DNA from: Convolutriloba macropyga
Lineage: Eukaryota
Reading direction: 5' to 3'
Assembly: GCF_964194025.1 (NCBI RefSeq)
Contig: NC_134470.1
Span: 37,882,001-37,946,000 of the forward strand
DNA: 64,000 bases
In this document: in pieces, positions 6,287 through 22,879 of the stretch
Position numbering within the stretch: the first letter of the stretch is position 1
Layout of the letters: each line of letters begins with the position of its first letter
Program-made: the position numbers and the translations under genes
Notes under the pieces: generated by a model
Database searches by the model: none
Told to the model about the DNA's origin: nothing
Seen by the model: the letters and a program-made list of their open reading frames with translations, nothing else

Positions 6287-6514
6287 TTTGAGGATTTTTC
6301 TGTTTTGAGGTTTCAAGGATTAAAATCAAATATGTCCAACTGAAAAACTAGCTTCTCATGAATGAAAGCCATTTCTTACATTATAAGTAACGAGCAACAG
6401 TTTAACTAAAGCTGGAACACGCTCGGCATAGTAACAGCCCCGCGACAACTAATAAATGCTGTCTCCATCTAAATCCGTGAACTCAGTTTTCGCATTTGTT
6501 TTTGTTCAAATTAA

Positions 6515-6759
6515 AGTAGTAATATGTGAGCAGATCAGGGGGGGGGGGGGGTAAAAGGAAGTACCTATGTATTAACATTAGGTATAGCCCAATTTCCCTC
6601 AAATCCCAAAGAAGTACCTCACAGCTTGATACCCACGCTGTTCACACGAGGGGGATTAGCAAGTTAATCCCTTAATATTAAATTAGGCCATTTACTCATT
6701 CCCATATTGCACTTTAATAATGTAAATTTCTAAAGACGTACCTCACAGCATGATACCCA
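6515..6759 (+). repeat. Left terminal inverted repeat (near-perfect part)
   Basis: Reverse complement of 22638-22879 except for the poly-G length (14 vs 11). Confidence 0.95.
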
Positions 6760-7886
6760 AGTTGTTCTCTCAAAGGGGATTAGCAAGATAGTCTTAACAA
6801 CAAATCAGTAAGGTCATTTACCCTTTCCCATATTACACTTTACTAATGTAAATTTTCAGTAGTGTACCTCACAGCATGATACCCACGCTGTTCACACGAA
6901 GGGGATTAGCAGGATAATGTTTTAATATTAAATTAGGTAGGATGACTCATCTACAGTTACGTAAGTTATACGCGATTTTCAAAAATGTACCTCACAGCAT
7001 GATACCCACGCTGTTCACACGAGGGGATTAGCTAGGTAATGTTTTAATATTAAATTAGGTAGGATGACTCATCTACAGTTACGTAAGTTATACGCGATTT
7101 TCAAAAATGTACCTCACAGCATGATACCCACGCTGTTCACACGAGGGAATTAGCTAGGTAATGTTTTAATATTAAATTAGGTAGGATGACTCATTTACAC
7201 TTACGTACGGTTTACGCGATTTTCAAAAATGTACCTCACAGCATGATACCCACGCTGTTCACACGAGGGGATTAGCTAGGTAATGTTTTAATATTAAATT
7301 AGGTAGGATGACTCATTTACACTTACGTACGGTTTACGTGATTTTCAAAAGTGTACCTCACAGCATGATACCCAAGCTGTTCACACGAAGGGGATTAGCA
7401 GTGCCTTAACATCAAATTAATAAGGTCATTTACCCCCAACCATATTAAACTTTAATAATGTAAATTTCCAAAGACGTACCTCACAGCATGACACCCAAGC
7501 TGTTCAAACGAAGGAGATTAGCAAGATTAGCAAGATAGCAGGACATTGACCCCTACCATATTAAATTTTAATAATGTAAAGTTCCAAAAGTGTACCTCAC
7601 AGCATGACACCCAAGCCGTTAACACTAAAAAGGATTAGCAAGATAGTACCTTAACAATGAATCAGTAAGGCCATTGACCCCCTACCGTAGTGCACTTTAA
7701 TAATGTAAATTTTCAAAAATGTACCTCACAGCGTGACAACCAAGCTGTTCACACTAAAGGGATTAGCTATAAAATGTTTAAATATTACATTAGATATGAT
7801 GACTCACAGTTATGTACGACTTACGTGATTTTCAAAAATGTACCGCACAGCATGATACCCAAGCTGTTCTCACGAAAGGGATTAGC
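6614..7886 (+). repeat. Left subterminal tandem array, 11 units of ~116-129 bp
   Basis: Core GTACCTCACAGCATGATACCCACGCTGTTCACACGAAGGGGATTAGC starts at 6614, 6738, 6864, 6987, 7109, 7231, 7353, 7476, 7592, 7721 and 7840. Confidence 0.95.
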
Positions 7887-7934
7887 AATATAATCCCTCA
7901 ATAACAAATTAGTTTGGATTACTCATTCATTCGC

Positions 7935-8650
7935 CATTACTCCTATTCATTATTTCAAAACAAATTCTAAAAATCAGTTGGTCAAATTCTTATTTAATTT
8001 ACTGTTTTCAGATAGACGTTGTTTCTTTCTCGTTGTTGACAGTTTCAATTTATCTTTTTGTTTTCAGATAGATTTTGTTTCTTTCTCCTTGTTGACAGTT
8101 TCAAGTTGACAGTTTTCAGATAGACTTTGTTTCTTTCTCCTTGTTGACAGTTTCAAGTTGAACACTTGCAGTGGGTAAGCAAACAAATTTTACTAAAAGA
8201 AATCTTGATTTGTTCCTGTATTAAAACTGAACCATTTTAGCCAGCCAAAGTTTCCCCCAACAGTAGATATTGCAACACTTCAGTTCGCTTCCAAATCCAA
8301 AAACAAACTGGTATGTTCGCTTTTATTAAGCCTCTACTCCTATTCCCAAACCACTACTTCTATTTATTATTTCAAACAACTTCTAAAAATCAGTTGATCA
8401 AAATTATAGTTAAATTTATCTCTTTTTTTCAGATAGTCTTTGTTTCTTTCTCCTTGTTGCCAGTTTCAAGTTGAACACTTGCAGTGTTGAAGCGGGTAAG
8501 CAACTAAATTTAATTAATAGAAATCTTCCGTTCTTCCTGTATTTAAACTGGACCATTTTAGCCAGCCAAAACTTTCCCCTATCGTAGATAATACAACACT
8601 TCACTTCAACTTTAAATCCAAAAAAAAAAGAAAACTGGTAAGTTTACTTT
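7935..8650 (+). repeat. Imperfect ~415-bp direct duplication with nested ~50-57-bp repeats in the Polinton non-coding region
   Basis: ttatttcaaa..ttctaaaaatcagttg at ~7950 and ~8367; accattttagccagccaaa at 8231 and 8552; three copies of tttcagatag...gttgacagtttcaa in 8006-8157. Confidence 0.75.
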
Positions 8651-8796
8651 AATTTAAACATGTTTTTGAGGTAGGAATATATACCTAATTATTGAATTAA
8701 AAGAACCATTGAAAATCATAAAATTCTTGCGTGATTAGACAATTAGTCACTATTTTATAGTCAAAATTAATCATAACATCACAATAACATCATAGC

Positions 8797-8969
8797 ACGT
8801 CACAATTACGTCGTAGCGTTTTCATAATTACGTCATAATGACATCATATTTACGTCATTATGTCGTCATAATTACGTCCTTTTGTCGTCACAATTACGTC
8901 ATTATATCGTTATAGCTACGTCATTTTGTCGTCGCAATTACGTCATTATGTCGTCATAATTACGTCATA
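8797..8969 (+). promoter_or_regulatory. Phased CRE/ATF-like (TTACGTCA) array upstream of pPolB
   Basis: TACGTC at 8807, 8829, 8851, 8873, 8895, 8917, 8939 and 8961 (exact 22-bp period), followed by GATAAA at 8973 and an Inr-like TCATTT with +1 at 9005. Confidence 0.7.
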
Positions 8970-9157
8970 TTTGATAAAGGACATTTCATTTCCGTTTTGT
9001 TTTCATTTTCTGATTTCTAGAATTGAGTGCAGTTGAGTACAAAAATCATTAAAACTTCTGAAAAATATTTTATTCCATCGCAACTTTCATTTTAACAATT
9101 GTTTTTACTCCTCCTTTCTCACTTCCAATCCAACATTATTTTTTATTTTCAGCGAAA

Positions 9158-12100
9158 ATGCCCAGAAATTCTAACCCAAAAGAACAGTGTTCTTCATGCA
9201 GTAAGCTTATTATGAAATCCAATATGAGCAGACATCAGAAGCTTCACGCAAAAAGATGTCAACAATGCTCCCAGTCATTTCCAGACGACCAGAAGCTGCA
9301 GCGTCACATTGCTTCTAAACATGCTCCATCTCTTATTCAAAAGAAGAAGTTTTCATGCAGCAGCTGCAATTCAACGTTCTCCACATATTATCAACTTCTT
9401 CATCATAAACGAAACAATTACCAGCATTCTGTTCCAGTGGCTTATGATGTTGACTTATCTATCTATGGAGACTCTCCAGCTCTTTATAGTGAACTTCAAA
9501 CCGTTCAACATTTTTTGCGTGACTCGGTTCTCGAATTGTCCAGGAAGAAAGTTCACAACTTCAAAATAATGGAGATCAACCATGAAACATTGATCGACAA
9601 GTTGGATTGTGTTTACAACGAGTTACCCAGTTCAGCTAAAATCAATATTTCCTTTGGATTCGTGCTGCAAAGTGTGCAAAATCCTGAAGAGTTTCGCTAC
9701 TACTACGCAGCAGATAACAACCCCGTATTCCTAAATCCTATGGTTCTCGCTGATGACTCAGATCTCAATTATATTAAATCAAAGCTGAGAGAAGATGAAA
9801 TTTTACCAAATCTAATCAATCAACGTCCAGACACAAAATGGAAGTTTTATTGCGTTACAAATGTCACTTTCTTTGTATTTCTCCTCAGTGGCGTTCCTCT
9901 AGGCTGTATCGCTCAAAACATTCCGTCTGTTCTGCTCAAGAACAAGCTTGTTAAGTGTTTTGTTTCGGATTGCGAAAACAAACCTTACCAGGACAATTTG
10001 TGTATGTTCCGTGCACTGGCCTATGAATTACATGGCAGCAATGAGCTACAACAAAATACAATGAAATTGATGCAGAATTTCCTCTCAGCGACAAGGAGAG
10101 ATGACGAAACCTTTCCAGGAATACATGAAGACGATATTCCTGTTCTTGAGGCTCTAGTTGACAGAAATATTCAAGTTTACTCCATAATTTTTGACGAACA
10201 ATCGGATATGTTTGCTGAACTTACTCGCCGCTCCTCGATGAAACGTTCAAAGACAACTTCATTACTGAGATATGAAAATCACATTTGTTGGACAGCAGAC
10301 ATCAACAAATTCCTCAAAAAGTTCCGATGCTACGTATGCGATCAGTTTTTCGACAGATCCTTCAACCTATTGCGGCACATGCAAAACTGCTCCGAAAACA
10401 CGCAACACAAATATCCAACAGGAGCCTATCAGTTATCTGAAACTATTTTTGAACGTCTGGAAGATGTAAACATTAATGTACCACAGGAGCTGAGATTGTT
10501 TTCTAACCTTATCGTATTCGATTTCGAGTCAATAACAGTCCCCGACAATACACTCAGAAACACAGAATTGACTTCTTGGATAGGAAAACATGTCCCCATT
10601 AGTGTGTCAATATCCTCGAATCTAATCTCCGCACCAATTTTTATTTGCAACGAAGATCCGCCTCAACTAATCCGTGATTTTGTATCCAGCTTGACTAATA
10701 TAGCAGAGAAAAGCATGCTTCTAATGAGGGAAAAACTCCATGATTTCGTGCTAGAATTGGAAGAAAAATATTGGGCAGTACGACAATTAGTTCCAGTGAA
10801 AGACAAGAAGGTACCTACCGGAGCGGAAGACTTATTGGACAACGAGGCGGAACCTGACGGAGAGGAAGAGGAAGACCTTGAAATACAGAGACTGAGATGT
10901 GAGCTCAAGATGTTATCAAATTTGAGACAAGATTTTGAGAACTATTACAGCACCATTCCTGTGTTTGGGTTCAACAGTTCGAGGTACGATTTGAACTTAA
11001 TCAAAGAGTATCTTCTGCATCATCTCCTAATAGAAAGAAACGTTGTTCCCAAAGTGATTCGAATGGGGAATAAATATATTGGCATGAATTTTCTTGGTCT
11101 ACAGTTTCTGGACATTTTAAACTTCCTGGGAGGAGCTACAACCCTGGATAACTTCCTAAAAGCCTATGGAGCGAGTGAAGAAAAAGGTTTCTTCCCCTAT
11201 GAATGGTTCGACAGTATTGAGAAGTTGAATGTATCCCAATTGCCACCAATCGACAGCTTTTGGAGCAAGTTGAAGAACCACAACGTTCTTTCGGTCGATT
11301 ACGATAAGTTCGTGCAATTGAAGAACGGTGGAATGCAAGAGGAGGCAATTTTGAAGAAGTTGAGACTGAAGAAAGTTCCACAAAATGCTGAAGAAAATTA
11401 CTTGGAGCTCCAAAATATTTGGAAAAGAGAAGGAATGCAGACGTTTCGCGACTTCCTCATGTGGTACAATAACAAAGATGTCGAACCTACACTTGAAGCT
11501 ATGGACAAAATGATCAGTTTTTACCACTCCAGACAAGTAGACATGTTAAAATTGGGCTACACTCTTCCCAACTTGGCAAACAGGTTCCTTCATTCGTCAA
11601 CAGATGCAGCTTTCTTTCCGTTTTGTGAGAAAGATAAAGAATATGATAATTACATTCGGAAATGGTTGACTGGGGGACCCTCAATTATCTTTACAAGGTA
11701 TGCAAAAGTTGGTGAAACAAAAATACGAGAGTCAGAAAACGTTTGCAAGTCAATTGTCGGAATAGATGCCAGTCAGTTGTACCCTTTTTCCATGACAAAA
11801 GAGATGCCAACAGGACCCTATACAAAATGGGAGTACAATGAAGAGACTGCAAAATTTCATCCAAACAGGAACTGGAGAAGCTACTTTGAACAGCAGGTCA
11901 TGGACTACTTCCAACAGGTTCACCCCAATTGTAAAATACAAACCCAGTTCACACACAAGAAACAAAAGAAGCTCGGTCCTTATTTAGTTGATGGGTTTTG
12001 TAACCATTGCAACACGGTCTTTGAAGCGATGGGTTGCTTCTTTCATTTTTGTCCGTGTCAAGAGGAAAAACCACTTCTCTTCGAGGACATTGAAAGCGGC

Positions 12101-13483
12101 TTGAAGCGGAGAGAACGTGACAATGATAGAAGAGAGTACCTGAAGGGATTGGGGTTGAATGTTGAAGAGATCTGGGAGTGTCAATGGAAGAAGTGGAGGA
12201 GCGAAAACACAAATGGGGTTAAAGACTTTCTCAAGTCAAATTATCCCTTCCAACCAGCGATGAACAAGCACTCGCTCATTGAGAAAATTAAACGTGGAGA
12301 ACTGTTTGGTGTCGTCGATTGTAGTCTTCAAGTTCCAGAGGAAATGTATCCTTACTTTGAAGACTTTCCTCCAATTTTCAAGAATTGTGAAGTGGGACGA
12401 GATGATATTGGGGACCATATGAAAGAGTTTGCAGAACGCAACAAATTACTATCCAGACCCAGAAAAATGCTCATTTCCAGTTTCAAGCTTGAACGAGGAC
12501 CAGTTATTACACCACTTTTGTTATTTTATCTAGAAAAAGGTGTGATCCTAAAAGACGTCTTTTGGTTTCTTCAATACACTCCCCGACGCTGCTTTGAGAC
12601 ATTTGTTCAGAATGTTGTCGATGCCCGCCGCGAAGGAGACCAGAATAGGGAGTCAACAGTCGTTGCGGAGACAATGAAGCTGATTGGAAACAGTTCGTAT
12701 GGATATCAGATCATGGACCGTAGTCGACATACGAATACCAAGTACGTGAAAGGATCACAGGTGGACAAATTTATTAACAATAGGTTTTTCAAGACTATGA
12801 ATGAGCTACCAGAGCAGATATATGAGATAGAAATGAGCAAGTCGCGTATCGATCATAAAGAACCAATAATTGTAGGCTTCTTCATCCTCCAGTACGCCAA
12901 ACTCACCATGCTACAACTTAAATACAACTTCTTCACCCCTTTCTGTGATAAGAACAAGTACGAACTCATTGAAATGGATACCGACAGTCTCTACATGGCC
13001 CTTAGCGAGGAAAAAATTGACGACATCATTCGACCAGAAATGCAATCAGTGTGGTACTGGATGAGACAGAGCGACTGCAATGATAACTTTGCAGCAAACT
13101 CCAGCAGCAATTTCTTCCCACGAGAATGTTGCAAAAAACATGCTGCCTTTGACAAGAGAACTCCTGGACTTTTTAAGGAAGAATTTAGATGCTCTGAAAT
13201 GATTGCTCTTTGTTCAAAGACATACTGCTGTTACGATGAGGAAACAGACACAGTTAAACTATCAAGTAAAGGACTCAACAAGAGCAACATTGAGGAGCCC
13301 CTAAACAAGTATAGAAAAGTTCTGTTCGATGAGGAGCGAGTTTATTCAACAAATCGTGGCTTCAGAGTTGTTGACAACAAGAAAGTTTGTACCTATGAAC
13401 TAAAGAAAGTGGGACTTTCATATTTTTATCCCAAGCGTAAAGTCTGTGAAGATGGTATTCACACTACTCCTTTAGATTTATAG
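9158..13483 (+). CDS. polB: Protein-primed family B DNA polymerase with N-terminal C2H2 fingers, vOTU-like domain and inserted VSR-like nuclease
   Basis: 1441 aa. ExoI IVFDFES, ExoII FNSSRYD, KGFFPY, ExoIII YNNKDV; motif A DASQLYP, motif B KLIGNSSYG, motif C MDTDS. DNLCMFRALA is OTU-like; VDG...EAMGCFFH...EIWECQW is VSR-like. Confidence 0.97.
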   Translation: MPRNSNPKEQCSSCSKLIMKSNMSRHQKLHAKRCQQCSQSFPDDQKLQRHIASKHAPSLIQKKKFSCSSCNSTFSTYYQLLHHKRNNYQHSVPVAYDVDLSIYGDSPALYSELQTVQHFLRDSVLELSRKKVHNFKIMEINHETLIDKLDCVYNELPSSAKINISFGFVLQSVQNPEEFRYYYAADNNPVFLNPMVLADDSDLNYIKSKLREDEILPNLINQRPDTKWKFYCVTNVTFFVFLLSGVPLGCIAQNIPSVLLKNKLVKCFVSDCENKPYQDNLCMFRALAYELHGSNELQQNTMKLMQNFLSATRRDDETFPGIHEDDIPVLEALVDRNIQVYSIIFDEQSDMFAELTRRSSMKRSKTTSLLRYENHICWTADINKFLKKFRCYVCDQFFDRSFNLLRHMQNCSENTQHKYPTGAYQLSETIFERLEDVNINVPQELRLFSNLIVFDFESITVPDNTLRNTELTSWIGKHVPISVSISSNLISAPIFICNEDPPQLIRDFVSSLTNIAEKSMLLMREKLHDFVLELEEKYWAVRQLVPVKDKKVPTGAEDLLDNEAEPDGEEEEDLEIQRLRCELKMLSNLRQDFENYYSTIPVFGFNSSRYDLNLIKEYLLHHLLIERNVVPKVIRMGNKYIGMNFLGLQFLDILNFLGGATTLDNFLKAYGASEEKGFFPYEWFDSIEKLNVSQLPPIDSFWSKLKNHNVLSVDYDKFVQLKNGGMQEEAILKKLRLKKVPQNAEENYLELQNIWKREGMQTFRDFLMWYNNKDVEPTLEAMDKMISFYHSRQVDMLKLGYTLPNLANRFLHSSTDAAFFPFCEKDKEYDNYIRKWLTGGPSIIFTRYAKVGETKIRESENVCKSIVGIDASQLYPFSMTKEMPTGPYTKWEYNEETAKFHPNRNWRSYFEQQVMDYFQQVHPNCKIQTQFTHKKQKKLGPYLVDGFCNHCNTVFEAMGCFFHFCPCQEEKPLLFEDIESGLKRRERDNDRREYLKGLGLNVEEIWECQWKKWRSENTNGVKDFLKSNYPFQPAMNKHSLIEKIKRGELFGVVDCSLQVPEEMYPYFEDFPPIFKNCEVGRDDIGDHMKEFAERNKLLSRPRKMLISSFKLERGPVITPLLLFYLEKGVILKDVFWFLQYTPRRCFETFVQNVVDARREGDQNRESTVVAETMKLIGNSSYGYQIMDRSRHTNTKYVKGSQVDKFINNRFFKTMNELPEQIYEIEMSKSRIDHKEPIIVGFFILQYAKLTMLQLKYNFFTPFCDKNKYELIEMDTDSLYMALSEEKIDDIIRPEMQSVWYWMRQSDCNDNFAANSSSNFFPRECCKKHAAFDKRTPGLFKEEFRCSEMIALCSKTYCCYDEETDTVKLSSKGLNKSNIEEPLNKYRKVLFDEERVYSTNRGFRVVDNKKVCTYELKKVGLSYFYPKRKVCEDGIHTTPLDL

Positions 13484-13708
13484 CTCGTTTTCATTAATCT
13501 TATATTTAAATCGCCTCTTTACTTTAATTCACAGTTTTCCTACCAAAATCTCTTTAACAAAAGACCTTTTTTTTGAAATAAATGAATTAGATACAATTAC
13601 AAATACAAATAATTAAATACAAAATTTACAAACTTTTAAAGTTTTGAAAACCATTTGCAGCATTTTACGAATTATTGTTTAAACACTTCAAATTTTGGTT
13701 TTCAAAAC

Positions 13709-14104
13709 TTACAAAACATCAGCAAAGAACGTCAATATATGAAAATCATTTAAATATTTAGACGAAACTTTAGAAAATAGCACATGTGCAAAATAAATAG
13801 CATATAAACCACACAATTCTGAATCTTGGAGTTTCTCCTGTACTAATGAACCAAAGTTTGCTCTTGTCCTGATGCCATATTTTTCCAAAACTTCTCCCAT
13901 CGAATCACCGTAGAACAACTTTCCATTTTTATTTGCAAGCAAAATCCAGTGGGAGCCCGGTTGAGTAGATGGATCTGTGTTGATTATACAAAACGTGTTT
14001 GTAGGTAAATTTTTCGGTCGAAGATCTGCAGGGAAGGAACCGAGATATTTGAACTTTAGGTGTGGGAACCTGTTGACAACATTTAAGAGTTGTTGATTAT
14101 CCAT
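13709..14104 (-). CDS. Adenain-like (adenovirus-type) cysteine maturation protease
   Basis: INTDPSTQPGSHW, FYGDSMG and LQDSELCGLYAIYF supply the His/Asp/Cys triad and the oxyanion Gln. ATG at 14104. Confidence 0.93.
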   Translation of the reverse strand: MDNQQLLNVVNRFPHLKFKYLGSFPADLRPKNLPTNTFCIINTDPSTQPGSHWILLANKNGKLFYGDSMGEVLEKYGIRTRANFGSLVQEKLQDSELCGLYAIYFAHVLFSKVSSKYLNDFHILTFFADVL

Positions 14105-15335
14105 TTTTGGTGACTGATCCCTCCTTATCAATTGCAATTGAGCTTATACGTTCACCACTAACAAATAATTCTACAGTATTGGTCAAATTGTTAGCAAAGT
14201 AGAGCTCCAAACGAATTCCTGCTCCAACTACATCAGGAAAATGCATTTCGACATTGGCCTCCTGTGTTGAAGTGAGATCGAAAAATAAATGAAAATGATT
14301 TTCAAAATCCTTGTATTGAATGTTAGGACCGTCATCATCAAATTTGAGTGCTTTCATTGTTTCAGCATAAGCTCTCACGTGATTTTCTGTTTTCAAGTTT
14401 ACAATAGTTTGATTCCCACGCACAATTTTAACTTGTCGAAGACCAAATTTACGAAAATGGAACGGATTCGTGTTGTATGTTCCACTGAACTCATTATTCA
14501 GATTCATAGCAATATCAATCATTCGAATTGGTTTGTTTGAAAATATATTTTCTTGTATAAACTGGTTCTGTCCAGCGGGAATAATAAACGTCTTTGGAAG
14601 TTCTTCATTATAGTAAAATATGGCAGGTTCTCGAAGCAGTCTGCTTTTGAAACTTCTCATCCAGTTATCTGAGATCGCTACCTGTCTAGTAAAAAGGCAA
14701 GCTTCCAAAATTATAGCCTCAGAGTTCAGCCCACCAGTATCGATCATATAGAACGCTGGAGATGATCGGATCAATTTCAGTCTGAGGTTGACATTTGGGA
14801 GAAGTAAAGTTTCACAAGCAAATAGACCTATTGCCAACGGACCGTAAAAAGTAAATTCATCTTTATCTTTTTGAAAAACAGTATCTGTAAAGGCTCTTTT
14901 TGTAAAATCGTTCGGTTCAATCTCGTATCGATATCCTTGGCATTGGGATAAGCTCTCCTTGGTACCTTTTGTTCCTGAAAATTCAGCAGAGACAAAAGCT
15001 TGGTGAGCATAAAGAGAATTGGCACTGTGAACTTGTTCATTGTTTAGATAGACTTCGCAATTAGAGAAAAGTGAATGAAGAGCATTGTTTACCAATAATG
15101 TTTCTTCGGCATTATCCAAACGTGTTCGATCGCCTTTAATAACCCTTCCTCTGATGAATAATCGAGTAGATCGCAAGTCAGTGAAAATATTACGATCAGT
15201 TTCCAATTGAAATTCGATTGTTGATTCGTTTAAGGAATTTGTTGGAAATATTTGTTGTTCATTGGACCAAAGAATTGGATCTAAAATTGGAACTTTCCCA
15301 AAAAAGTCGAGCATAGAGTGAGACAAGGAATTCAT
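14097..15335 (-). CDS. Major capsid protein (double jelly-roll, hexon-like)
   Basis: 412 aa from ATG 15335. Polinton MCP motifs IEF..FTDL..TRL, NNALHSLFSNCEVYLN, LLPNVNLRLKLIRS, NPFHF, FDLT. Lies between penton and protease. Confidence 0.92.
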   Translation of the reverse strand: MNSLSHSMLDFFGKVPILDPILWSNEQQIFPTNSLNESTIEFQLETDRNIFTDLRSTRLFIRGRVIKGDRTRLDNAEETLLVNNALHSLFSNCEVYLNNEQVHSANSLYAHQAFVSAEFSGTKGTKESLSQCQGYRYEIEPNDFTKRAFTDTVFQKDKDEFTFYGPLAIGLFACETLLLPNVNLRLKLIRSSPAFYMIDTGGLNSEAIILEACLFTRQVAISDNWMRSFKSRLLREPAIFYYNEELPKTFIIPAGQNQFIQENIFSNKPIRMIDIAMNLNNEFSGTYNTNPFHFRKFGLRQVKIVRGNQTIVNLKTENHVRAYAETMKALKFDDDGPNIQYKDFENHFHLFFDLTSTQEANVEMHFPDVVGAGIRLELYFANNLTNTVELFVSGERISSIAIDKEGSVTKNG

Positions 15336-15375
15336 TTTAGCCGACCGTTTTTTATAATGATAATTGAGGAAATGA

Positions 15376-16176
15376 TCAAGTTTTTTTCTGAAATAATAAA
15401 GTAAGTTGAACTTGACCAATAGGGAAGAAGGGAACAAGCTGTCCAGCAGCGTTTCTTAACTCTACATGGATACTGTGGAAGTTCGATTTGATTACTTTAT
15501 GGAATCTCAAGTGTTCGAAACTGCGATAACTCAGAACCTGCGATCTCTTAAAAATCTCATCATTGTGGAACTCTCGGTGTTTGAATGGAAAGGAGCGTAG
15601 AAGAGGACATTTCACATCACCGACTGAATTGGGTTCAACTATATCCAAGTAGAGTAAAACTGTATGTGTTCCAGTAATATCAAAAGGGAGATCTGCCGTT
15701 GCCCAGGATTTAGTGTTGTATGATCTTTTCGAATAAGGCATAACAGGTTTGTCAGCTTCAACGCCCAAGTTAGCAGCCAAACTTTTGCTGAATGATACAT
15801 TTTGAGATTCTCTATTGCAAAAAGTTAGTCTTCGACTTTTTTTGTCGATGTTGATGGAAAATTGAGGATCTAAGTTTTTGGGATGTCGTGCTTTTTTGGG
15901 AATATCTGTAAGACTCTTTACAAATTCATCCATAGAGTTAAAAACTGCTGGTGGAATGGCAAAGACATGCTTAAATTTCTCATCGTAGTGAAAGGTCATC
16001 AATCCTCCTTCAACGTTATAACATATACCGGGATATGATACTTCGACTAAAGCTACTTCCCAAGATCCATCCAGTTCAATTTTGTCGGGAAGAAAATTAG
16101 TGAATGAAGCCATTGTATTTTGAGGATAAACTTGAGAAGAAGCGTTGGATACTAATTCAAGATAAAACGAATTCAT
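15376..16176 (-). CDS. Minor capsid protein (penton-like)
   Basis: N-terminus FYLELVSNAS..YPQNT..SF...L....L.GSWEVAL.E.SYP and C-terminal YLDIVE...VGD..CPLLR are typical of Polinton mCP. Confidence 0.92.
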   Translation of the reverse strand: MNSFYLELVSNASSQVYPQNTMASFTNFLPDKIELDGSWEVALVEVSYPGICYNVEGGLMTFHYDEKFKHVFAIPPAVFNSMDEFVKSLTDIPKKARHPKNLDPQFSINIDKKSRRLTFCNRESQNVSFSKSLAANLGVEADKPVMPYSKRSYNTKSWATADLPFDITGTHTVLLYLDIVEPNSVGDVKCPLLRSFPFKHREFHNDEIFKRSQVLSYRSFEHLRFHKVIKSNFHSIHVELRNAAGQLVPFFPIGQVQLTLLFQKKT

Positions 16177-16217
16177 GATGTTTGACTGTACTCTGTGACG
16201 TTTGTTTGGGAAAATGA

Positions 16218-16556
16218 TTAGTCAAGGTTCTTCAGAAAGTCTTTCCGAATTTTTTGCCGAACGATACTTTGTCTCGTGTTTTTCCTCTTTTTCATACCAC
16301 CACCAACCTGTTTTCGTATTGTTGATTTCGCAGTCTTCTTTACTGCTTTTTTAATTGAAGTCTGTCCTGATAAAACACCTCCAATTTCGGGAATGGCTGA
16401 CTCGATTACATCTCGTCCAATTTTTTTTGCTGCAGGTAAAACGTATTTCTTGAGAATTGGGAGAGTTGTTCTAGCGACTGTTCTAGCCAATGCTCCAAAG
16501 CCACGCCCTCTCTGACGAGGGACTCCTTTAAAATAAGGCAGATTGTAACCGTCCAT
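16218..16556 (-). CDS. Small basic virion core/cement-like protein with QxGxG motifs
   Basis: QRGRGFGAL followed by an amphipathic helix, QVGGG and a K/R-rich tail. Resembles the Polinton structural-module ORF whose QxGxG sites are presumed adenain cleavage sites. Confidence 0.75.
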   Translation of the reverse strand: MDGYNLPYFKGVPRQRGRGFGALARTVARTTLPILKKYVLPAAKKIGRDVIESAIPEIGGVLSGQTSIKKAVKKTAKSTIRKQVGGGMKKRKNTRQSIVRQKIRKDFLKNLD

Positions 16557-16583
16557 TTTCTAGCGCGACTAATTGAAAAATGA

Positions 16584-17528
16584 TTATTTAACTTTTGACA
16601 ATTCTTGCTCGTAAAAGATTCCATCAATGTTTTCTCCTTTCTGATCAACAACAAAGTAAGTCGGGAAAGGAGCCAAAGTGTTTATTTTTCGAATTAGGAA
16701 AATTTCATGTGTATAGTGAGGCTTATATCCTTTTTGAAAATTGTGCCCTACTAATACCAACCGAACTTTATCACCTACTTTAAAATTAGGCTTCTTGTTT
16801 TTTCGTAGTTTCATCCGCTTGTACATGACAGTCAAAAAGTCAGCATTGACTACATTTTTGGGTGCCAAACCAATACTTCGATTTATTCTAGAGTTGATGA
16901 TGTCAACAAACATTTGCAGGTCTCTGATGTAAGATAATGTGTCCTTTTCCTCCAGGTAGCGGTAAATTAAGTTTTTCAGGGTTCGTATAGCTCTCTCGCC
17001 AAAAGCTACTTTTGTTTCACTATAAGTGTGATAATATTTGACTCCCACATCCTCGCAGAAATTGGCCATATCTCCAAAAAACTCTTTTCCTTGATCTAGC
17101 CATAACTTTTTTGGGAAATTGAGTTCGTTCTTTTTCGAACACATTTTGATAAAAGCTGCTTTCACACCCTCTGGTCTTTTGCTTCGTAATGCTTCTACTC
17201 GCAAGAATCGAGAAAAAACATCGACAGTAACGAGTAAAAAGTTGATACCTCGGTTCCATTGTGATAGTTTATCCATTTGTGCAAGATCCAAGCACCAAAT
17301 CTCATCAATATAGCGAGCATGCGCATTTAGCCGGGGAAATTTTCGTCTGATTCCTTTGTACTTCGTATAAGAGTCTTTTGACTGTAAAAAATCGGTAACT
17401 CTCTCGCGACTGATTCCACTTGATTTTGTTAGGTTATTGATAGAACCGAAAGCTGTTGGTCCCTTCCCTTTATACAACTTCTGCAATTTGATTCTATCTG
17501 AAACTGTAATTGAACCAGTCTGAGCCAT
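16584..17528 (-). CDS. int: Retroviral-like (DDE) integrase, no C-terminal chromodomain
   Basis: WCLDL (D), VDVFSRF, WLDQGKEF (D), GERAIRTLK (E), FKVGDKVR, GIFYEQEL, then stop. Confidence 0.95.
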   Translation of the reverse strand: MAQTGSITVSDRIKLQKLYKGKGPTAFGSINNLTKSSGISRERVTDFLQSKDSYTKYKGIRRKFPRLNAHARYIDEIWCLDLAQMDKLSQWNRGINFLLVTVDVFSRFLRVEALRSKRPEGVKAAFIKMCSKKNELNFPKKLWLDQGKEFFGDMANFCEDVGVKYYHTYSETKVAFGERAIRTLKNLIYRYLEEKDTLSYIRDLQMFVDIINSRINRSIGLAPKNVVNADFLTVMYKRMKLRKNKKPNFKVGDKVRLVLVGHNFQKGYKPHYTHEIFLIRKINTLAPFPTYFVVDQKGENIDGIFYEQELSKVK

Positions 17529-17964
17529 ACTGTGTCCTCAAAATGTTGTTTTTAACCAGATGTGGTCTCAGATTTAGAACTTTAAGAATAAGGAAATAGT
17601 TTGGATCAACTGGAGCGTTCTTCAATTTAATTGAATGAAGGAATGTTTTTATATCAACTCCTGTGTCAACGTTGTCAACAATAATTGTATTGGAAAGTGA
17701 AATTTTTAACCGTTTGTTTTCGTAAATCTCTTTCAAAGTTTTCAATGTCTCAGGATAGTTCTTATAGTGAAATTCCAGGTCTGTCTTAAGTTCTTTAGGT
17801 GGACGCTCGGTTTTTTCGGAACTAACTTCTTCTTTCACTTTTTTGATAACTGGGAAAACAGTTTCTTCCTTTTTATAGATCTCGCAGGAGGGTTCCGGTA
17901 ATTTCCTTTTTCTGGTCTCCCACAGTTCTTTTGGAACAAGAACAAACTTTTTGACCTCACTCAT
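17494..17964 (-). CDS. Polinton conserved hypothetical protein (KKxVLVP N-terminus, PZ-like)
   Basis: MSEVKKFVLVP N-terminus and C-terminal QYGSDW. Overlaps both neighbours in the gene block. Confidence 0.65.
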   Translation of the reverse strand: MSEVKKFVLVPKELWETRKRKLPEPSCEIYKKEETVFPVIKKVKEEVSSEKTERPPKELKTDLEFHYKNYPETLKTLKEIYENKRLKISLSNTIIVDNVDTGVDIKTFLHSIKLKNAPVDPNYFLILKVLNLRPHLVKNNILRTQYGSDWFNYSFR

Positions 17965-18277
17965 TGAAGAAAGTTGAAAATTTGTTCATACAAGGTTGAT
18001 ATATGTACCCTAATATTTTTATTCCAGCTTTCGAGCCCAAAATAAGTCTTCTGGAATTGAGGGTTGTTGATTTTGACGTGAGCTTTCTAAGTTGTTTTTG
18101 GAAGCGAACAAACTGATTTTTTCTTACTCCTGTGAGGTTTCCTTCAATCAAGTTTACAATACACTCACAGAGAAATCTGATGAACTCTTTAGGACAATTT
18201 AGAAGGAAAGCTGGTTGAAATTTCTTGCTGAGATTCCGAAAGAGCTTCAGAGTATAATAGTTCTGTGCGTTTATCAT
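17957..18277 (-). CDS. Polinton conserved small protein (PW-like)
   Basis: FIRFLCECIVNLIEGNL motif. ATG at 18277; the ORF-track start at 18313 is a TTG. Confidence 0.75.
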   Translation of the reverse strand: MINAQNYYTLKLFRNLSKKFQPAFLLNCPKEFIRFLCECIVNLIEGNLTGVRKNQFVRFQKQLRKLTSKSTTLNSRRLILGSKAGIKILGYIYQPCMNKFSTFFNE

Positions 18278-18929
18278 TAATATCAGTAATACGAGCACGA
18301 CTGTTCGGTACAAAGAATTCTGAGGGAAATGATGTTACATTTGAACAGTATCTCAACAAATCAGGTGTAGATGGTCTCAAATCAATCATAAGATGACCAT
18401 ATGGTTCTTCTGTTGCATCATCATACCAATCTTTTAGTTGTCTTCCGAGACCTAGCTGTCTTCCCAAGATATCAATCTGCTGCACATCTCTCGGTGATTT
18501 GAACAAAACAATGTGAGTAGTCTGCAGCTCGGCATCACGTCCAGTTTTGTTTTTGTGGAAGAGATTATGCTTGATATATACACAATTTAGGTTTCGATGT
18601 CTACCGGCTGTCGCAATTCCGTTGAATTTTTCCGACTAGGAAAGAATGTCCAATGAATCATCGAATATAAGTAAATATTTAGTACCGTCAGCGGGTAAGT
18701 TATCGATTAAATCAAAGTCAACTCCCTGAATGAATTCTATATCTGCAATTGATTGCATCATTGTGTCGTAAATTGGCTGAAAGTGCTTATAAAAGTATAA
18801 AATTCGATCAAATGATGGTTGAAAAGTTTTCATTCGTAGCATATCATTGATAAAAACAGTTTTTCCAGATCCGGAAGGACCAACAAGATACATCAAAATT
18901 CGTTCGTTTGTTGAAATGATTTTGTTCAT
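18189..18929 (-). pseudogene. FtsK/A32-type genome-packaging ATPase interrupted by a single in-frame TAG (18636-18638)
   Basis: Walker A GPSGSGKT and Walker B LLIFDD. Reading past the TAG gives SEKFNGIATAGRHRNLNCVYIKHNLF...LQTTHIVLFKSPRD...PYGHLMIDL in frame. Confidence 0.93.
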
Positions 18930-18930
18930 T

Positions 18931-19185
18931 TTATGTTCTGGGATTAGGAAGTATATAACCAACGGCACTTGAAAGAATAGCAATCCAAACTGTTCGCTCG
19001 TCACAAGTTCTAGCAAAAATAAGATTAATAATTGAAAACAGAAGCAGTACTAATACAACTAAGCACTGAAATATTGACAAAAAAGCTGTTCGAGAGCAAG
19101 TGCGACCACAGATTTTCCAAGGAGGTCTTTCTTGATTGTTATTATCAAAAATAAAGTCAGATGCGTGATTGAGATGATCTGTCAT
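18931..19185 (-). CDS. Small two-transmembrane-helix protein
   Basis: Two hydrophobic segments and a C-terminal GYILPNP. Has its own Inr/DPE-like promoter and abuts the ATPase ATG. Confidence 0.75.
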   Translation of the reverse strand: MTDHLNHASDFIFDNNNQERPPWKICGRTCSRTAFLSIFQCLVVLVLLLFSIINLIFARTCDERTVWIAILSSAVGYILPNPRT

Positions 19186-19227
19186 TAGAGAGCAACTGAT
19201 TTTTGTTCGTCTTTAGGAAATAATGAT

Positions 19228-19626
19228 TCACACTTTGATAAATTGGAATCGTGGTGACATTTTCAAAAAACAACAATATGCAAGACCTGTTATATGTCCC
19301 AAGAAACAAAAATTCAATATAGAATTAAAAAATGGAACCATGTAACAATATCCAGGACCAATATTTAGATTTGTTTTCAGGTATCCTGCGGCATCATGAA
19401 ATGTAGCATGTAATCGAAAAATTTTTGACCAATTGAGAAGTTTTTCTAACTTTGAGTCACCAACTCCTATTAGTCCCCCAAACGGAGCTTCTCTGTTGAT
19501 TTTATCCAGATCTAAATTTTTGTTCAAGCTTCGACAGACAGCCAAAAAATAATTTTTGCGTTTTGTATTTCCAACAAAAAGTTTACTGATTTCTTTCTCT
19601 AACGCTACAATTTCCTCAATGTTCAT
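19228..19626 (-). CDS. Phospholipase A2-like (PLA2X) protein
   Basis: GGLIGVG loop and LHATFHDAAGY (HD catalytic motif), then GPGYCY. ATG 19626 lies just after the Inr/DPE-like motif. Confidence 0.65.
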   Translation of the reverse strand: MNIEEIVALEKEISKLFVGNTKRKNYFLAVCRSLNKNLDLDKINREAPFGGLIGVGDSKLEKLLNWSKIFRLHATFHDAAGYLKTNLNIGPGYCYMVPFFNSILNFCFLGHITGLAYCCFLKMSPRFQFIKV

Positions 19627-19713
19627 ATCAAGCAACTGTACTGGAACATTAAATTTTAAAAAGTGATTAAAGACAAACATCACAACATACAATATAAAAA
19701 TTTTCAATAACTT

Positions 19714-20463
19714 TTATGCACTTTGCGATCTTTTTTGGTTTTTGACTTTGTTCAGCACTGAAATAATTTCATCGCTCATTCTGTGTAGTTTCTCCATCTC
19801 GCCAATTCTGACCGAAAGAAAGCATTTCCTTCTAAAACTGTCCTTTTCAGTCCCTCGTGTGAACAGCTTGATTGTGAAATAACATCGATTCGGATCATCT
19901 TGGAAAAATATTCTAGTCACACACACCTTCCGTCGAGCAGTCTCACTCACCTCCCAGAACACATCAAATTTTGCTTTTTCCTCAACATCAGTTGGTTGGA
20001 ACACAGTTTCGTCAATCACCAGCTTCGCAGTACCTACAGTAGGTTCGAACAGTAGTGCTTCTTTTATCATCTCAGGTATCTTTTCAATAACAAGCTTCAA
20101 TTCTCTGGCCGATAGCATCAGAAATTGATGCAGAACATATTCACTTTCCACATTTTCGCGAAATACTTTCAAGTGAGTCCAGTTAGAGTTTGTGTTGATT
20201 GTTTCCTCTGGGATGCTGATTTGAAACTTCCGGTTCCCGTATTCTTGAAAGGACCAACAGTTGTTTCTTCCATCGTGCTCCTCATTTGGTTTTGAGTCGG
20301 TGTTGTCTTTTTTATCGTTGTTGTCTTTAAATAGAGAAAACATGCTCTCATTGTGGTATTCCAATTGTGGTGAGGGAACAACTGGTTTTCCTTTGTAATC
20401 TCGTTTACGGATGGGAAAGGAGAATGGTTTTTTGGAGTTAGGAGAGACAGAGCTTTGATCCAT
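19714..20463 (-). CDS. Hypothetical protein with two internal repeats, probably tandem PC4-like ssDNA-binding domains
   Basis: WSFQEYGNRKFQIS..THLKVF..FLMLSARELKLV is repeated as WEVSETARRKVCVT..FTIKLF..FLSVRIGEMEKL. Confidence 0.6.
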   Translation of the reverse strand: MDQSSVSPNSKKPFSFPIRKRDYKGKPVVPSPQLEYHNESMFSLFKDNNDKKDNTDSKPNEEHDGRNNCWSFQEYGNRKFQISIPEETINTNSNWTHLKVFRENVESEYVLHQFLMLSARELKLVIEKIPEMIKEALLFEPTVGTAKLVIDETVFQPTDVEEKAKFDVFWEVSETARRKVCVTRIFFQDDPNRCYFTIKLFTRGTEKDSFRRKCFLSVRIGEMEKLHRMSDEIISVLNKVKNQKRSQSA

Positions 20464-20525
20464 CTGTGAAATGAGAATGTGAATTATTTAAAGTTTTTAA
20501 AGCAGAAAATTTGGGTCTACAAGGG

Positions 20526-20781
20526 TAACTGAATATTGAAATCGCAAAGAAACAAATGAATGAATTGTCTTTAAGAAAGGGCTGGATATCTTGAACCAAT
20601 GAAATTTAAGTAAGAACGAGAACAGTTGCGAAAAATAAACTTCGTATCCAATGAGATGTTATAAAATAATTCGTAACCAATGAAAATAGAGCGTGCATCA
20701 TGACGTAATAGTTATGTCACTTCTATTTTTAGTAACATCACGTGATGCCAAAGATGAGTTTTCTATATTTAGTCACGTGAG
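20526..20781 (-). promoter_or_regulatory. Promoter of the 19714-20463 gene: Inr+DPE, three CCAAT boxes, CRE-like site, two E-boxes
   Basis: Inr +1 at 20557 and AGTTA at +28..+32. CCAAT at 20596, 20648 and 20677; TGACGTAA at 20701; TCACGTGA at 20738 and 20773. Confidence 0.6.
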
Positions 20782-20817
20782 GGTGAATTTAGCATCGAAC
20801 AAAAGCGAGTTATCTCT

Positions 20818-21399
20818 CTATTCTATTGGAGAACACTTATAGTTCGAGAAAGGAATATTTTGATGAGATGATTGAGTCTCTTCATTGTCAGTTTCCTGGA
20901 TCGGAGGAAGAATAAGGTCTTTGAAATCGGGCAGATTGAAGGCTTCTGGTTTTTTAGAAAATGAGTCAGCATGCTTGGAGAACATGTCTTCTACCCACCA
21001 AACACCGTAGTGATTTATGTCACGAGAGTACGGGAACATAATTCCTTTGCTGTCTTTCAACGGGTGAAACCCTTGTTCTTTTGGAATTCTTTCAATGGTT
21101 TGAAAATAAGTTTGGAGAGAAAGCAATGAATTGTTGACTTTTTCTTCGGCTAGGTGGAGGTTATGATGTCTAGCTGCCTCTAAAGTTCTCCACAAATCCT
21201 TCGGAAGTGTCAAGCTAGTTGTCTGAGTTTTAATTGTTACTCTAGTGCAATCCACCTCAAAAGATAATTCCAAATTGTTATCGGTTACTACCGTTTTAAA
21301 TATTGATGCTTCCGTGATAGGAGCGTAATCTAAATCTGAATGAAAAGTGGAAAGAAAAGATGTTGAAGGAAGTAAAGGAAGAATTGGAGTATTTTGCAT
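20818..21399 (-). CDS. Polinton hypothetical protein, possibly a single PC4-like fold
   Basis: 193-aa ATG ORF with an Inr upstream. RVTIKTQTTSLTLPKDLWRTL resembles the PC4 C-terminal 'ISLxxxxWxxL' motif. Confidence 0.65.
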   Translation of the reverse strand: MQNTPILPLLPSTSFLSTFHSDLDYAPITEASIFKTVVTDNNLELSFEVDCTRVTIKTQTTSLTLPKDLWRTLEAARHHNLHLAEEKVNNSLLSLQTYFQTIERIPKEQGFHPLKDSKGIMFPYSRDINHYGVWWVEDMFSKHADSFSKKPEAFNLPDFKDLILPPIQETDNEETQSSHQNIPFSNYKCSPIE

Positions 21400-21689
21400 T
21401 TTTTTTTAGGCTACTGATGTTCATCCAAGACAAAAGACAAAATGAATCGTAAATGTTTTTCAGCATCAACATTCCAAAATCAGATCTGACAGATTATGTG
21501 ATTGGTTAAAAATAAAAAAATAAGAAAGACATTTTCAAAACAATAATACAACTTTTTCTGAAATCGGAAAATTGGAACTTCAGTTTAAAACGACACAGTG
21601 AAACACTATTTCAAACATAAAATTGATTAAAATTGTACAAAAATCTAAAAATCAAAAATAAAAAATTGTACTTTTTTGTTAATATGCGA

Positions 21690-22785
21690 ATGGGTGGGTA
21701 AATGACCTTATTAGTTTGTTGTTAAGACACTATCTTGCTAATCCCTTTAATTTGAAGAGCTTGGGTATCTTACTGTGAGGTACATTTTTGAAAATCACGT
21801 AAGCTGTACATAAGTGTAAATGAGTCATCCTATCTATTTTAACATTAAAACATTACCTAGCTAATCCCCCTTTGTGTGAACAGCTTGGTGTCATGCTGTG
21901 AGGTACATTTTTGAAAAGTCGTATGTAACTGTAAATGAGTCATCCTAAATTATTATTGAAGGATTATCTTGCTAATCCCCTTCGTGTGAACAGCTTGGTT
22001 ATCATGCTGTGAGGAGGTACATCTTTGGAAATTTACGTTATTAAAGTGTTATTTTGTAGAGGGTCGATGACCTTATTAATTTGTTGTGAAATCACTATCT
22101 TGCTAATCCCCTTCGTGTGAACAGCTTGGGTGACATGCTGTGAGGTACACTTTTGAAAATTTACATTAGTAAACTGTAATATGGTAGGGGGTCAATGACT
22201 TGACTGATTTGCTGTTAAGGCACTATCTTGCTAATCCCCTTCGTGTGAACAGCGTGGGTATCATGCTGTGAGGTACGTCTTTAGAAATTTACATTATTAA
22301 AGTGCAATATGGGAATGAGTAAATGGCCTAATTTAATATTAAGGGATTAACTTGCTAATCCCCCTCGTGTGAACAGCGTGGGTATCATGCTGTGAGGAGG
22401 TACATCTTTGGAAATTTACGTTATTAAAGTGTTATTTTGTAGAGGGTCGATGACCTTATTAATTTGTTGTGAAATCACTATCTTGCTAATCCCCTTCGTG
22501 TGAACAGCTTGGGTGACATGCTGTGAGGTACACTTTTGAAAATTTACATTAGTAAACTGTAATATGGTAGGGGGTCAATGACCTGACTGATTTGCTGTTA
22601 AGGCACTATCTTGCTAATCCCCTTCGTGTGAACAGCGTGGGTATCATGCTGTGAGGTACGTCTTTAGAAATTTACATTATTAAAGTGCAATATGGGAATG
22701 AGTAAATGGCCTAATTTAATATTAAGGGATTAACTTGCTAATCCCCCTCGTGTGAACAGCGTGGGTATCAAGCTGTGAGGTACTT
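21690..22785 (-). repeat. Right subterminal tandem array, 9 cores, including a ~383-bp three-unit duplication
   Basis: Reverse-complement cores of the left array. 22000-22382 is repeated at 22383-22765. Confidence 0.92.
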
Positions 22786-22879
22786 CTTTGGGATTTGAGG
22801 GAAATTGGGCTATACCTAATGTTAATACATAGGTACTTCCTTTTACCCCCCCCCCCTGATCTGCTCACATATTACTACT
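22638..22879 (-). repeat. Right terminal inverted repeat (near-perfect part)
   Basis: Reverse complement of 6515-6759. Confidence 0.95.

Follow-up and report, generated by a model that had tools for sequence, protein, structure and literature searches.

The 64,000-nucleotide stretch of the Convolutriloba macropyga genome analysed here (contig NC_134470.1, positions 37,882,001 to 37,946,000; hereafter the window, in whose numbering coordinates are given) contains a complete element of the Polinton/Maverick type, 16,365 bp in length (6515-22879), and the subject of this report is a two-part signal that recurs at the starts of its genes and has the geometry of TATA-less core promoters made of an initiator (Inr) and a downstream promoter element (DPE). 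The element is delimited by its termini, its terminal inverted repeats (TIRs) and its gene content. A perfect 6-bp target-site duplication, AATTAA, lies on either side (6509-6514 and 22880-22885), and both termini read AGTAGTAATATG... The left TIR (6515-7913) and the right TIR (21679-22879) are 1.2-1.4 kb long and carry tandem repeats of ~120 bp and ~120-128 bp, respectively, which are 77-88% identical between the arms. A run of 13-14 G is found ~25 nt inside each end (6509-6560 and 22830-22885), and 2.9 copies of a 52-bp tandem repeat (8004-8161) separate the left TIR from the region upstream of the gene for the putative DNA polymerase (polB). The latter gene is on the plus strand and is met by 12 further genes on the minus strand, which occupy the stretch between 21399 and 13709; beyond both converging gene sets, canonical poly(A) hexamers are first encountered in the gap between them, at 13483-13709. 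Long TIRs with a 6-bp duplication, a double jelly-roll major capsid protein (MCP), an rve integrase and, partly by way of relatives, a packaging ATPase of the A32/FtsK type and a protease of the adenain/Ulp1 type assign the element to the Polintons/Mavericks. The table of open reading frames (ORFs) and Pfam searches revealed no RNA polymerase gene in the element, and Rfam and tRNA searches of the window returned no match. The flanking host DNA is AT-rich (36% GC) and lacks long ORFs, with intron-like GTGAGT...TTTTCAG signals; ten ORFs from these flanks had no Pfam match. A host of the parabasalid type, a group with a TCAYW initiator and short leaders, was considered and rejected in view of the scarcity of long ORFs and the canonical intron signals in the flanks.

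An earlier note on this DNA had listed nine sites at which an initiator-like TCAYT, with its A numbered +1, is followed at a near-constant distance by a downstream box of the form RGWYV, and a script reading of the sequence found all nine where they had been placed, bar small corrections. The box begins at exactly +28 ahead of five genes, those for the MCP, a small basic "core" protein, a protein with two hydrophobic segments (2TM), a protein labelled "PLA2-like" and a 249-aa protein labelled "PC4-like", and it is displaced by one nucleotide ahead of three others, the putative penton gene and an ORF called PW (both +29) and polB (+27). A TATA box near -30 is absent from 9/9 of these sites, in agreement with the TATA-less promoters that the note had proposed. 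On the minus strand, the MCP promoter (15342-15375) is predicted from a TCATT with its A at 15373 and GGTCG at +28 to +32, with the ATG at +39; the penton promoter (16183-16217) from a TCATT with its A at 16215 and AGTCA at +29 to +33, with the ATG at +40; and the core-gene promoter (16550-16583) from a TCATT with its A at 16581 and GGACG at +28 to +32, which is overlapped by the ATG at +26. Four initiators had been said to follow directly on an upstream stop codon, and three do abut it exactly, namely these same three, on the TGA of the penton gene, the TAA of the core gene and the TAA of the integrase gene, respectively. The fourth, in the 2TM promoter (19193-19226, minus strand; TCATT, A at 19224; AGTTG at +28 to +32; ATG at +40), stands one base after the TGA of the PLA2-like gene; this promoter is nearly identical in a related locus of intermediate divergence, L013. 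The PLA2-like gene has a TCACT (19633-19666, minus strand; A at 19664; AGTTG at +28 to +32; ATG at +39), and the TAA ahead of it is not the stop codon of the annotated upstream gene. The predicted promoter of the 249-aa gene (20526-20559, minus strand) combines TCATT (A at 20557) with AGTTA at +28 to +32, with the ATG as far away as +95. On the plus strand, the candidate core promoter of polB (9003-9035) has TCATT with its A at 9005 and AGTTG at +27 to +31, followed by a leader of 153 nt without an ATG.

Two of the nine sites are weaker candidates. At ORF193 (21411-21445, minus strand) the A of TCATT is at 21443, not 21445 as first given, and CAGT stands at +28; AGTAG is indeed found at +29, as the note had reported, but it fails RGWYV and is not a DPE match, and this copy has an out-of-frame upstream ATG. 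A CCAAT box lies ~58 nt upstream of this candidate. The PW site (18298-18332, minus strand; TCATT, A at 18330; AGTCG at +29) is located within the ATPase reading frame and its box fails RGWYV in relatives; we regard it as a doubtful promoter because coding constraint (S-F-P and N-S codons) can explain its conservation.

In the window taken alone, the association between the two boxes is suggestive. RGWYV occurs at +28 after 5 of the 41 gene-sense TCAYT sites, where the other offsets average 0.88 (Poisson P 2e-3), and dinucleotide shuffles of the window reached five at +28 in 0/2000 cases and five at some offset between 8 and 60 in 41/2000. It is the relatives of the element that make the result decisive. 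Homologues of its MCP are plentiful in long-read eukaryote assemblies, and 12 loci around such homologues were analysed, with MCP identities from 98% to 36%, together with L013, which was reached through the 249-aa protein; a search of a viral contig collection found no MCP relative. A separate metagenome collection supplied a replication set of 80 loci, 37 with an MCP identity of at least 35% and 43 below that level. An unbiased scan for 6-mers in the 80 nt ahead of ATGs in eight independent elements placed TCATTT at the top (33 vs 54 in the background, 4.8-fold, P 7e-11), with CAGTCG and AACAGT also among the first four. Seven relatives (MCP 41-57% identical) that had played no part in forming the hypothesis have RGWYV at +28 after 16 of their 76 gene-proximal TCAYT sites, where ~1.1 is expected per offset from 8 to 60 (P 2e-14), and at +29 and +27 after a further 8 and 4, respectively; among their 169 TCAYT sites distant from gene starts there is no peak. 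When the count is restricted to intergenic sites with the box wholly in the leader, 6/27 remain at +28 vs 0.3 expected (P 5e-7). The 37 metagenome loci replicate the peak independently, with 21/115 sites at +28 and 12 at +29 vs 2.1 expected (P 1.5e-14). Conservation of the spacing in relatives, which the earlier note had named as a check on its claim, is thus borne out in both sets.

The same signal emerges when the search is reversed, in that TCATT is found 27 nt upstream of gene-proximal RGWYV in 38/895 cases vs 3.5 in shifted registers, and TCATT is the only 5-mer enriched at that position; TCAGT is not used. Across the eight elements, a sense-strand pair stands ahead of 31/99 genes as compared to 1/99 in antisense and 7.4% of random anchor points, and a TCAYT of any kind is found within 70 nt of 53/99. 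Host flanks totalling 92.6 kb, with 536 TCAKTY sites, show no peak at +28, which excludes base composition as the cause; host promoters are too sparse in these flanks for usage by the host to be judged. Shared ancestry does not explain the pair either, because among eight orthologous 2TM promoters and seven orthologous core-gene promoters the spacers have diverged to 33-39% identity, about the random level for AT-rich DNA, and the Inr has remained 94-100% identical with its spacing kept. The 43 metagenome loci with MCP identity below 35% (in the range L050-L093) have overlapping genes and show no peak (3/71 at +28 vs 1.5 expected), and three distant Polintons, L010-L012, have tightly overlapping genes, few pairs and no peak at +28. 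By these comparisons the pair is specific to a clade rather than general to Polintons, and this promoter type is perhaps also specific to a host lineage.

The anatomy of the pair was drawn from 70 de-duplicated examples, all of which have TCA[T/C]T by the rule of the search. The box is at +28 in 41, at +29 in 23 and at +27 in 6, and all other offsets are at background counts; the distribution is narrow but has more than one value, and the spacing is near-strict rather than strict, with one third of the pairs at +29. AGTTG (17) and AGTCG (12) are the most frequent downstream boxes, followed by GGACG (6) and AGTCA, GGTCG and GGTTG (5 each). TATAWA is found at -36 to -21 in 1/70 pairs, and the other 69 are TATA-less. 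Beyond the columns fixed by the search, the 41 exact pairs show preferences for T at +20 (27/41), A at +23 (30/41), a purine at +24 (39/41) and G at +32 (33/41), and around the initiator for T at +4 (29/41) and A at -4 (25/41). Informative downstream columns are confined to the stretch between +20 and +35, concentrated at +23 to +33, and nothing informative is seen upstream of -4. The footprint thereby takes in the zone from +18 to +33 at which TFIID touches Drosophila promoters (PMC5580651).

Start codons fall anywhere from +9 to +121 in the 70 pairs. Ten pairs, most of them belonging to the small basic core gene, place the ATG precisely at +26, a register in which the box opens with the G of the ATG and the G that follows it. 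These ten comprise the core genes of the window, L002, L005, L008 and L009 and genes for 124-158 aa in L018, L021, L024, L029 and L039, which by size and position look like the core gene; in the core gene of L007 the ATG is likewise at +26, but the box fails RGWYV. The penton genes of relatives have their ATG at +9 or +10 (three at +9), with the box within the coding sequence. All told, 29/70 pairs have the ATG no farther downstream than +33, and transcription of those genes must therefore start upstream of the downstream box. In relatives with the core gene before the MCP gene, a TCAYT with AGTCG at +28 is found in the 3' end of the core frame, or just upstream of the MCP gene on short contigs (L006 9939, L007 9933, L011 9943, L012 8662, L019 4544, L020 431, L027 178 and L034 467), and the ATG follows at +59 to +91. 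These core-embedded pairs look like MCP promoters within coding sequence, although Ile-Ile and Ser-Arg codons could also explain them.

Some genes have additional sites farther upstream. A 22-bp tandem array (8798-8973, plus strand) with six TTACGTCR sites, which resemble the cAMP response element (CRE) and ATF sites, lies 38-200 nt upstream of the polB initiator and is likely to be the upstream activating region of that gene. One extra copy of this type of site is found at 20701-20708, upstream of the 249-aa gene. The upstream region of the latter gene (20594-20810, minus strand) includes three inverted CCAAT boxes (TCATTGGWT), two CACGTGA and one TTACGTCA. In relatives, the divergent early intergenic region has either 2-5 CCAAT boxes or 1-4 palindromic TCACGTGA sites, as scored in L002 (3312-3686), L004 (3379-3739), L006 (3086-3506) and L007 (2908-3268). 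To judge by their sequences, the CCAAT, E-box and CRE-like sites look like ordinary sites for cellular activators. In L013, both boxes of the 249-aa gene are conserved together with its upstream CCAAT, CACGTG and ACGTCA sites, and its leader has diverged beyond +35, up to the AG before the ATG. Just before the ATG, the polB leader ends in TTTTATTTTCAG and the 94-nt leader of the 249-aa gene in TTTCACAG (9026-9157 and 20464-20525), and these leaders may contain 5' untranslated introns. Avoidance of upstream ATGs was uninformative, as 28/34 predicted leaders are free of them vs 25/34 controls.

The genes of the capsid module have only the minimal pair. The MCP gene (14097-15335, minus strand, as for all genes described below with the exception of polB) encodes 412 aa, and its AlphaFold2 model (pLDDT 79.5, pTM 0.80) is a double jelly-roll that Foldseek matches to the MCPs of iridovirus, PBCV-1, Sputnik and mavirus with E values of about 1e-15. 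Upstream of it are the putative penton gene (15376-16176, 266 aa), identified by position and size, and the small basic core gene (16218-16556, 112 aa). The penton product had no Pfam match, and neither did that of the "PLA2-like" gene (19228-19680), so both of these labels of the earlier note go unsupported by the Pfam search. The PLA2-like frame encodes 150 aa from its first in-frame ATG and 132 aa from an alternative ATG at 19626, which is the one that follows the predicted start site. The 2TM gene (18931-19185) encodes 84 aa. The gene order of this copy, with core ahead of penton and a polB that runs from the left end towards the capsid module, differs from that of relatives L002-L009, in which penton is ahead of core and polB diverges from the early region.

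Genes without a pair of their own tend to overlap or abut a neighbour. The cysteine protease gene (13709-14104, 131 aa), with weak matches to Peptidase_C5 and C48 and a PF00770 match in relative L012, lacks an Inr and shares 8 nt with the end of the MCP gene. The gene for the A32-type packaging ATPase (18189-18929), also without an Inr, begins 1-2 nt past the 2TM stop codon; this copy is interrupted by one in-frame stop codon with zero frameshifts, and all other genes of the element are open. Its Walker-A piece matches Pox_A32 weakly (19.6 bits, cut-off 22.8), and the intact ATPase of L002 matches the same family with 29.9 bits (E 4.8e-7). The rve-type integrase gene (16584-17528, 314 aa; PF00665, E 3.3e-8, 34.2 bits, cut-off 32.6) overlaps ORF156 (17494-17964) and has no Inr; a Pfam search assigned no function to ORF156. 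Nor did one to ORF193 (20818-21399). The PW ORF (17957-18277; 106 aa when read from the first ATG) overlaps the ATPase gene at its 3' end, in a different frame, and ORFs of matching size (105-117 aa) occupy this place in 5/7 relatives (L002, L004, L005, L007 and L016). The ATPase/2TM, protease/MCP and integrase/ORF156 arrangements recur as overlapping or abutting genes in all relatives, with no initiator for the second gene; across L002-L009, as in the window (13709-19185), the 2TM and ATPase genes are 1-2 nt apart or overlapping and the MCP and protease genes overlap by 8 nt.

The polB gene (9158-13483, plus strand), a putative protein-primed family B DNA polymerase gene, is an uninterrupted frame of 1441 aa with a DTDS motif, and relatives show faint or weak matches to PF03175; the polymerase part of the window protein had no sequence match in Pfam or PDB. 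Its N-terminus (9158-9420) carries C2H2 zinc fingers (ZNF568-like, E 1e-5), which are unusual in a polymerase, and zf-C2H2 matches are present in relatives also. The 249-aa gene (19714-20463) encodes a protein whose AlphaFold2 model (pLDDT 71, pTM 0.66) consists of two beta-beta-beta-beta-alpha repeats. The best Foldseek matches are Pur-alpha repeats I-II (E 1e-4, TM 0.63-0.68), with MRP1/2 and Whirly next and weak matches to PC4 homologues (E 0.02-0.04), and no Pfam family was matched at E 0.1, PF02229 included. On the evidence of the model, the protein is a member of the Pur-alpha/Whirly/PC4-like fold superfamily of single-strand nucleic-acid-binding proteins and not of the PC4 (Sub1/p15) family, so that the earlier "PC4-like" label is right for the fold and wrong for the family; we refer to it as PUR/PC4-like. 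Three observations from related loci concern other features. A tRNA gene (60 bits) at 12458-12529 of L008, ~300 nt downstream of the protease gene, was the sole Rfam match in seven loci. In L001, a 98%-identical copy, the host flank (1-2387) has an uninterrupted ORF of 723 aa with a Med25_VWA match, preceded by an intron-like stretch of ~85 nt (GTGAGT...TTTTCAG); the protein database returned this protein itself alone, and PDB nothing. A non-LTR (long terminal repeat) retrotransposon with RVT_1 and Exo_endo_phos ORFs adjoins the related Polinton in L011 (94-2664).

The pair of TCATT and a box at +28 is a selected, strand-specific and TATA-less signal that is linked to gene starts and has the canonical geometry of Inr and DPE, and we think it likely that such pairs are host core promoters of the Inr+DPE type, used by RNA polymerase II and TFIID. 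The A of TCATT would be the +1 of a TATA-less core promoter, and the box between +28 and +33 (RGWYV, mostly AGTYG or GGWYG) would be its DPE. Host TFIID would bind the two together; under the Drosophila rule, RGWYV occupies +28 to +32 counted from the initiator's A+1 and TFIID, which contacts the zone from +18 to +33, binds cooperatively, and the TAF6/TAF9 contact and the dependence on the box are known for Drosophila and human factors (PMC5580651). For structural and small genes (MCP, penton, core, 2TM and PLA2-like), the minimal pair alone would serve, squeezed between the upstream stop codon and the gene's own ATG or laid over that ATG, and genes that look early (polB, the PUR/PC4-like gene and ORF193) would add CRE-like, CCAAT and E-box sites upstream. 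The pairless genes for the ATPase, protease and integrase and ORF156 are probably read from a neighbour's transcript or from nested, 3'-co-terminal transcripts. Since some genes lack a signal and overlap or abut the gene upstream, they are in our reading expressed from shared or nested transcripts, and the conserved arrangements with a pairless second gene suggest bicistronic or nested expression. A depletion of poly(A) hexamers had been considered as evidence for nested transcripts and was set aside as weak, since the antisense strand is similarly depleted. The gene-by-gene transcription proposed in the earlier note would accordingly apply to the genes with a pair (31/99) and is too strong as a statement about every gene.

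Several points weigh against the reading of the pairs as host Inr+DPE promoters. DPE use is documented mainly in Drosophila, and the link to TFIID/TRF2 would be an analogy drawn from that organism. The start site at A, TFIID as the reader and the structure of the transcripts are all inferred, with the +1 positions predicted from sequence. Two thirds of the genes in the eight elements have no pair. Of the pairs, one third have the box at +29 and 9% have it at +27; a shift of 1 nt in the spacing costs several-fold activity in Drosophila (PMC5580651). Some boxes are in coding sequence, as at PW, the penton genes of relatives and the MCP promoter in the core gene, and may be kept by their amino acids. 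In 24/70 pairs the box reads CAGT, which is itself Inr-like, and leaders as short as 8 nt, in the penton genes of relatives, would be unusual for scanning ribosomes.

A virus-specific promoter, with a reader encoded by the element (the PUR/PC4-like protein or the zinc-fingered N-terminus of polB) or by a helper virus, would make the likeness to Inr+DPE partial or convergent. Virophage-type relatives do have motifs that match those of giant viruses (TCTA; PMC8547959), the architecture described here is clade-specific and absent below 35% MCP identity, its Inr is solely TCATT or TCACT and never TCAGT, and the element does encode a nucleic-acid-binding protein of the PC4/PUR/Whirly fold. Such a reader would have to account for a peak at one offset, +28 of the 53 tested, and for the very class of 5-mers that defines the cellular Inr-DPE, in an element that encodes no RNA polymerase, whose early genes bear ordinary cellular CCAAT, E-box and CRE-like sites and whose motif does not resemble the late motif published for giant viruses (PMC8547959); we consider this explanation unlikely. 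A further idea is that the element runs a self-contained early-to-late switch, in which early genes with CCAAT, E-box and CRE sites would make, among others, the single-strand-binding protein and this Pur-alpha/PC4-like protein would license the minimal Inr+DPE promoters of the capsid genes. Human factors reportedly require PC4 for DPE-specific transcription (Lewis et al. 2005, cited in PMC5580651), which by analogy permits, but does not support, an element that supplies its own cofactor for late promoters. We hold such a switch to be improbable; if true, the TCATT/+28 pair would be a late promoter tuned by the virus and not merely a borrowed host promoter.

The pair might also act in RNA, as a bipartite mark on polycistronic transcripts for processing by cleavage or trans-splicing or for internal initiation of translation. 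It is strand-specific and located at cistron boundaries, often abutting the upstream stop codon, an AG stands a few nt before several ATGs, TTTTCAG acceptors occur in the host flanks, and the gene array has 8 poly(A) hexamers vs 15.4 expected, which makes long read-through RNAs plausible. The spacing, however, is fixed to TCATT and not to the ATG (which ranges from +9 to +121), TCATT lacks the AG of a splice acceptor, the boxes show no apparent complementarity, so that no stem is expected, the antisense strand is equally depleted of poly(A) hexamers, and the match to a rule that operates at the level of DNA would be a coincidence; this makes an RNA signal quite unlikely in our view. As for the downstream box alone, it was also considered as a 5' splice donor and rejected, as AGTYG offers no AG|GT junction. 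Less probable again is a reversal of roles, in which CAGTYG would be the true initiator, with the start at its A, and TCATT an unconventional element 27-28 nt upstream in the place of a TATA box. The distance is close to the usual one from TATA to start, the 24/70 boxes that read CAGT have the core of an initiator of the arthropod type, and both CAGTCG and AACAGT occur in excess ahead of ATGs. An RNA begun at the box would lack its start codon in the 29/70 pairs with the ATG at or before +33, among them the ten +26 sites, the penton genes at +9 to +10 and a gene for 135-139 aa; moreover, 46/70 boxes are not CAGT (GGACG, GGTCG, GGTTG and others), and TCATT is poor as a TBP site and good as an initiator. 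An origin by chance, or as a by-product of base composition, coding constraint or common descent, could be entertained for the window alone (a look-elsewhere probability of ~2%, from the 41/2000 shuffles) and for the sites embedded in coding sequence, but is exceedingly improbable given P values near 1e-14 in both independent sets of relatives, the significance of intergenic sites by themselves, spacers at random identity and the lack of a peak in flanks, on the antisense strand and at non-proximal sites.

If the pairs are host Inr+DPE promoters, as we favor, they bear on an aspect of these elements, their transcription, that is essentially undescribed. A full-text literature search found no description of core promoters, initiators or transcription start sites in Polintons/Mavericks, in keeping with what the earlier note had said of core-promoter architecture. 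The Inr+DPE kind of promoter, downstream elements in retrotransposons and recurring motifs of the virophage type are already known (PMC5580651, PMC4748587 and PMC8547959, respectively). Promoters of a cellular Inr+DPE type ahead of capsid genes would argue for transcription in the nucleus by host RNA polymerase II without a helper virus. Some 70 start sites are now predicted at the level of the base, and the pair is a marker that can be read from sequence only, which may help to tell Polinton lifestyles apart and point to host lineages. It also provides a natural comparative series outside Drosophila, in which dozens of diverged promoters hold the +28 register, even over a start codon.

The closest known system is the TATA-less Inr+DPE promoter of Drosophila (Burke and Kadonaga; PMC5580651), which shares with the Polinton pair an initiator of the form TCA(T/G)T, RGWYV at +28 to +32 and the absence of a TATA box. 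Both also confine their extra downstream information to +20 to +27, the zone of the motif ten element (MTE) and bridge, with a purine at +24, and a cooperative two-box logic would be common to both. The Polinton clade differs in its Inr, which is TCATT or TCACT and never TCAGT, in the one third of its pairs at +29 and in boxes that overlie stop and start codons, with the +26 ATG as part of the box; its start sites and its binding by TFIID are predictions. Internal Inr+DPE promoters are also found in the Drosophila non-LTR retrotransposons jockey, Doc and I. A downstream core element of a retrotransposon is likewise described for Trypanosoma cruzi, the Pr77 of L1Tc (PMC4748587). As is the case for the Polinton pair, a downstream core element makes the promoter of such a mobile element travel along with it and need little or no upstream DNA; the retrotransposons have one promoter at the 5' end and one transcript, whereas the Polinton would have six to nine promoters, one per gene or gene pair. 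Outside insects, an Inr with a DPE-like box is also known from the cestode Taenia solium, where the DPE is bound by TAF6/TAF9 (PMC11361659); that case concerns a single host gene and rests on biochemistry, and the Polinton evidence is purely comparative and draws on ~70 promoters. Virophages and endogenous mavirus-like elements, finally, have a TCTA promoter motif in AT-rich DNA (PMC8547959), and resemble the present clade in having a short motif within the ~100 nt upstream of most genes and in the clade-specific nature of the motif type. Their motifs are copies of a late promoter from a cytoplasmic giant virus, which implies that a helper is needed, whereas the Polinton pair appears to copy a cellular core promoter for RNA polymerase II, which would imply transcription that is nuclear and independent of a helper.

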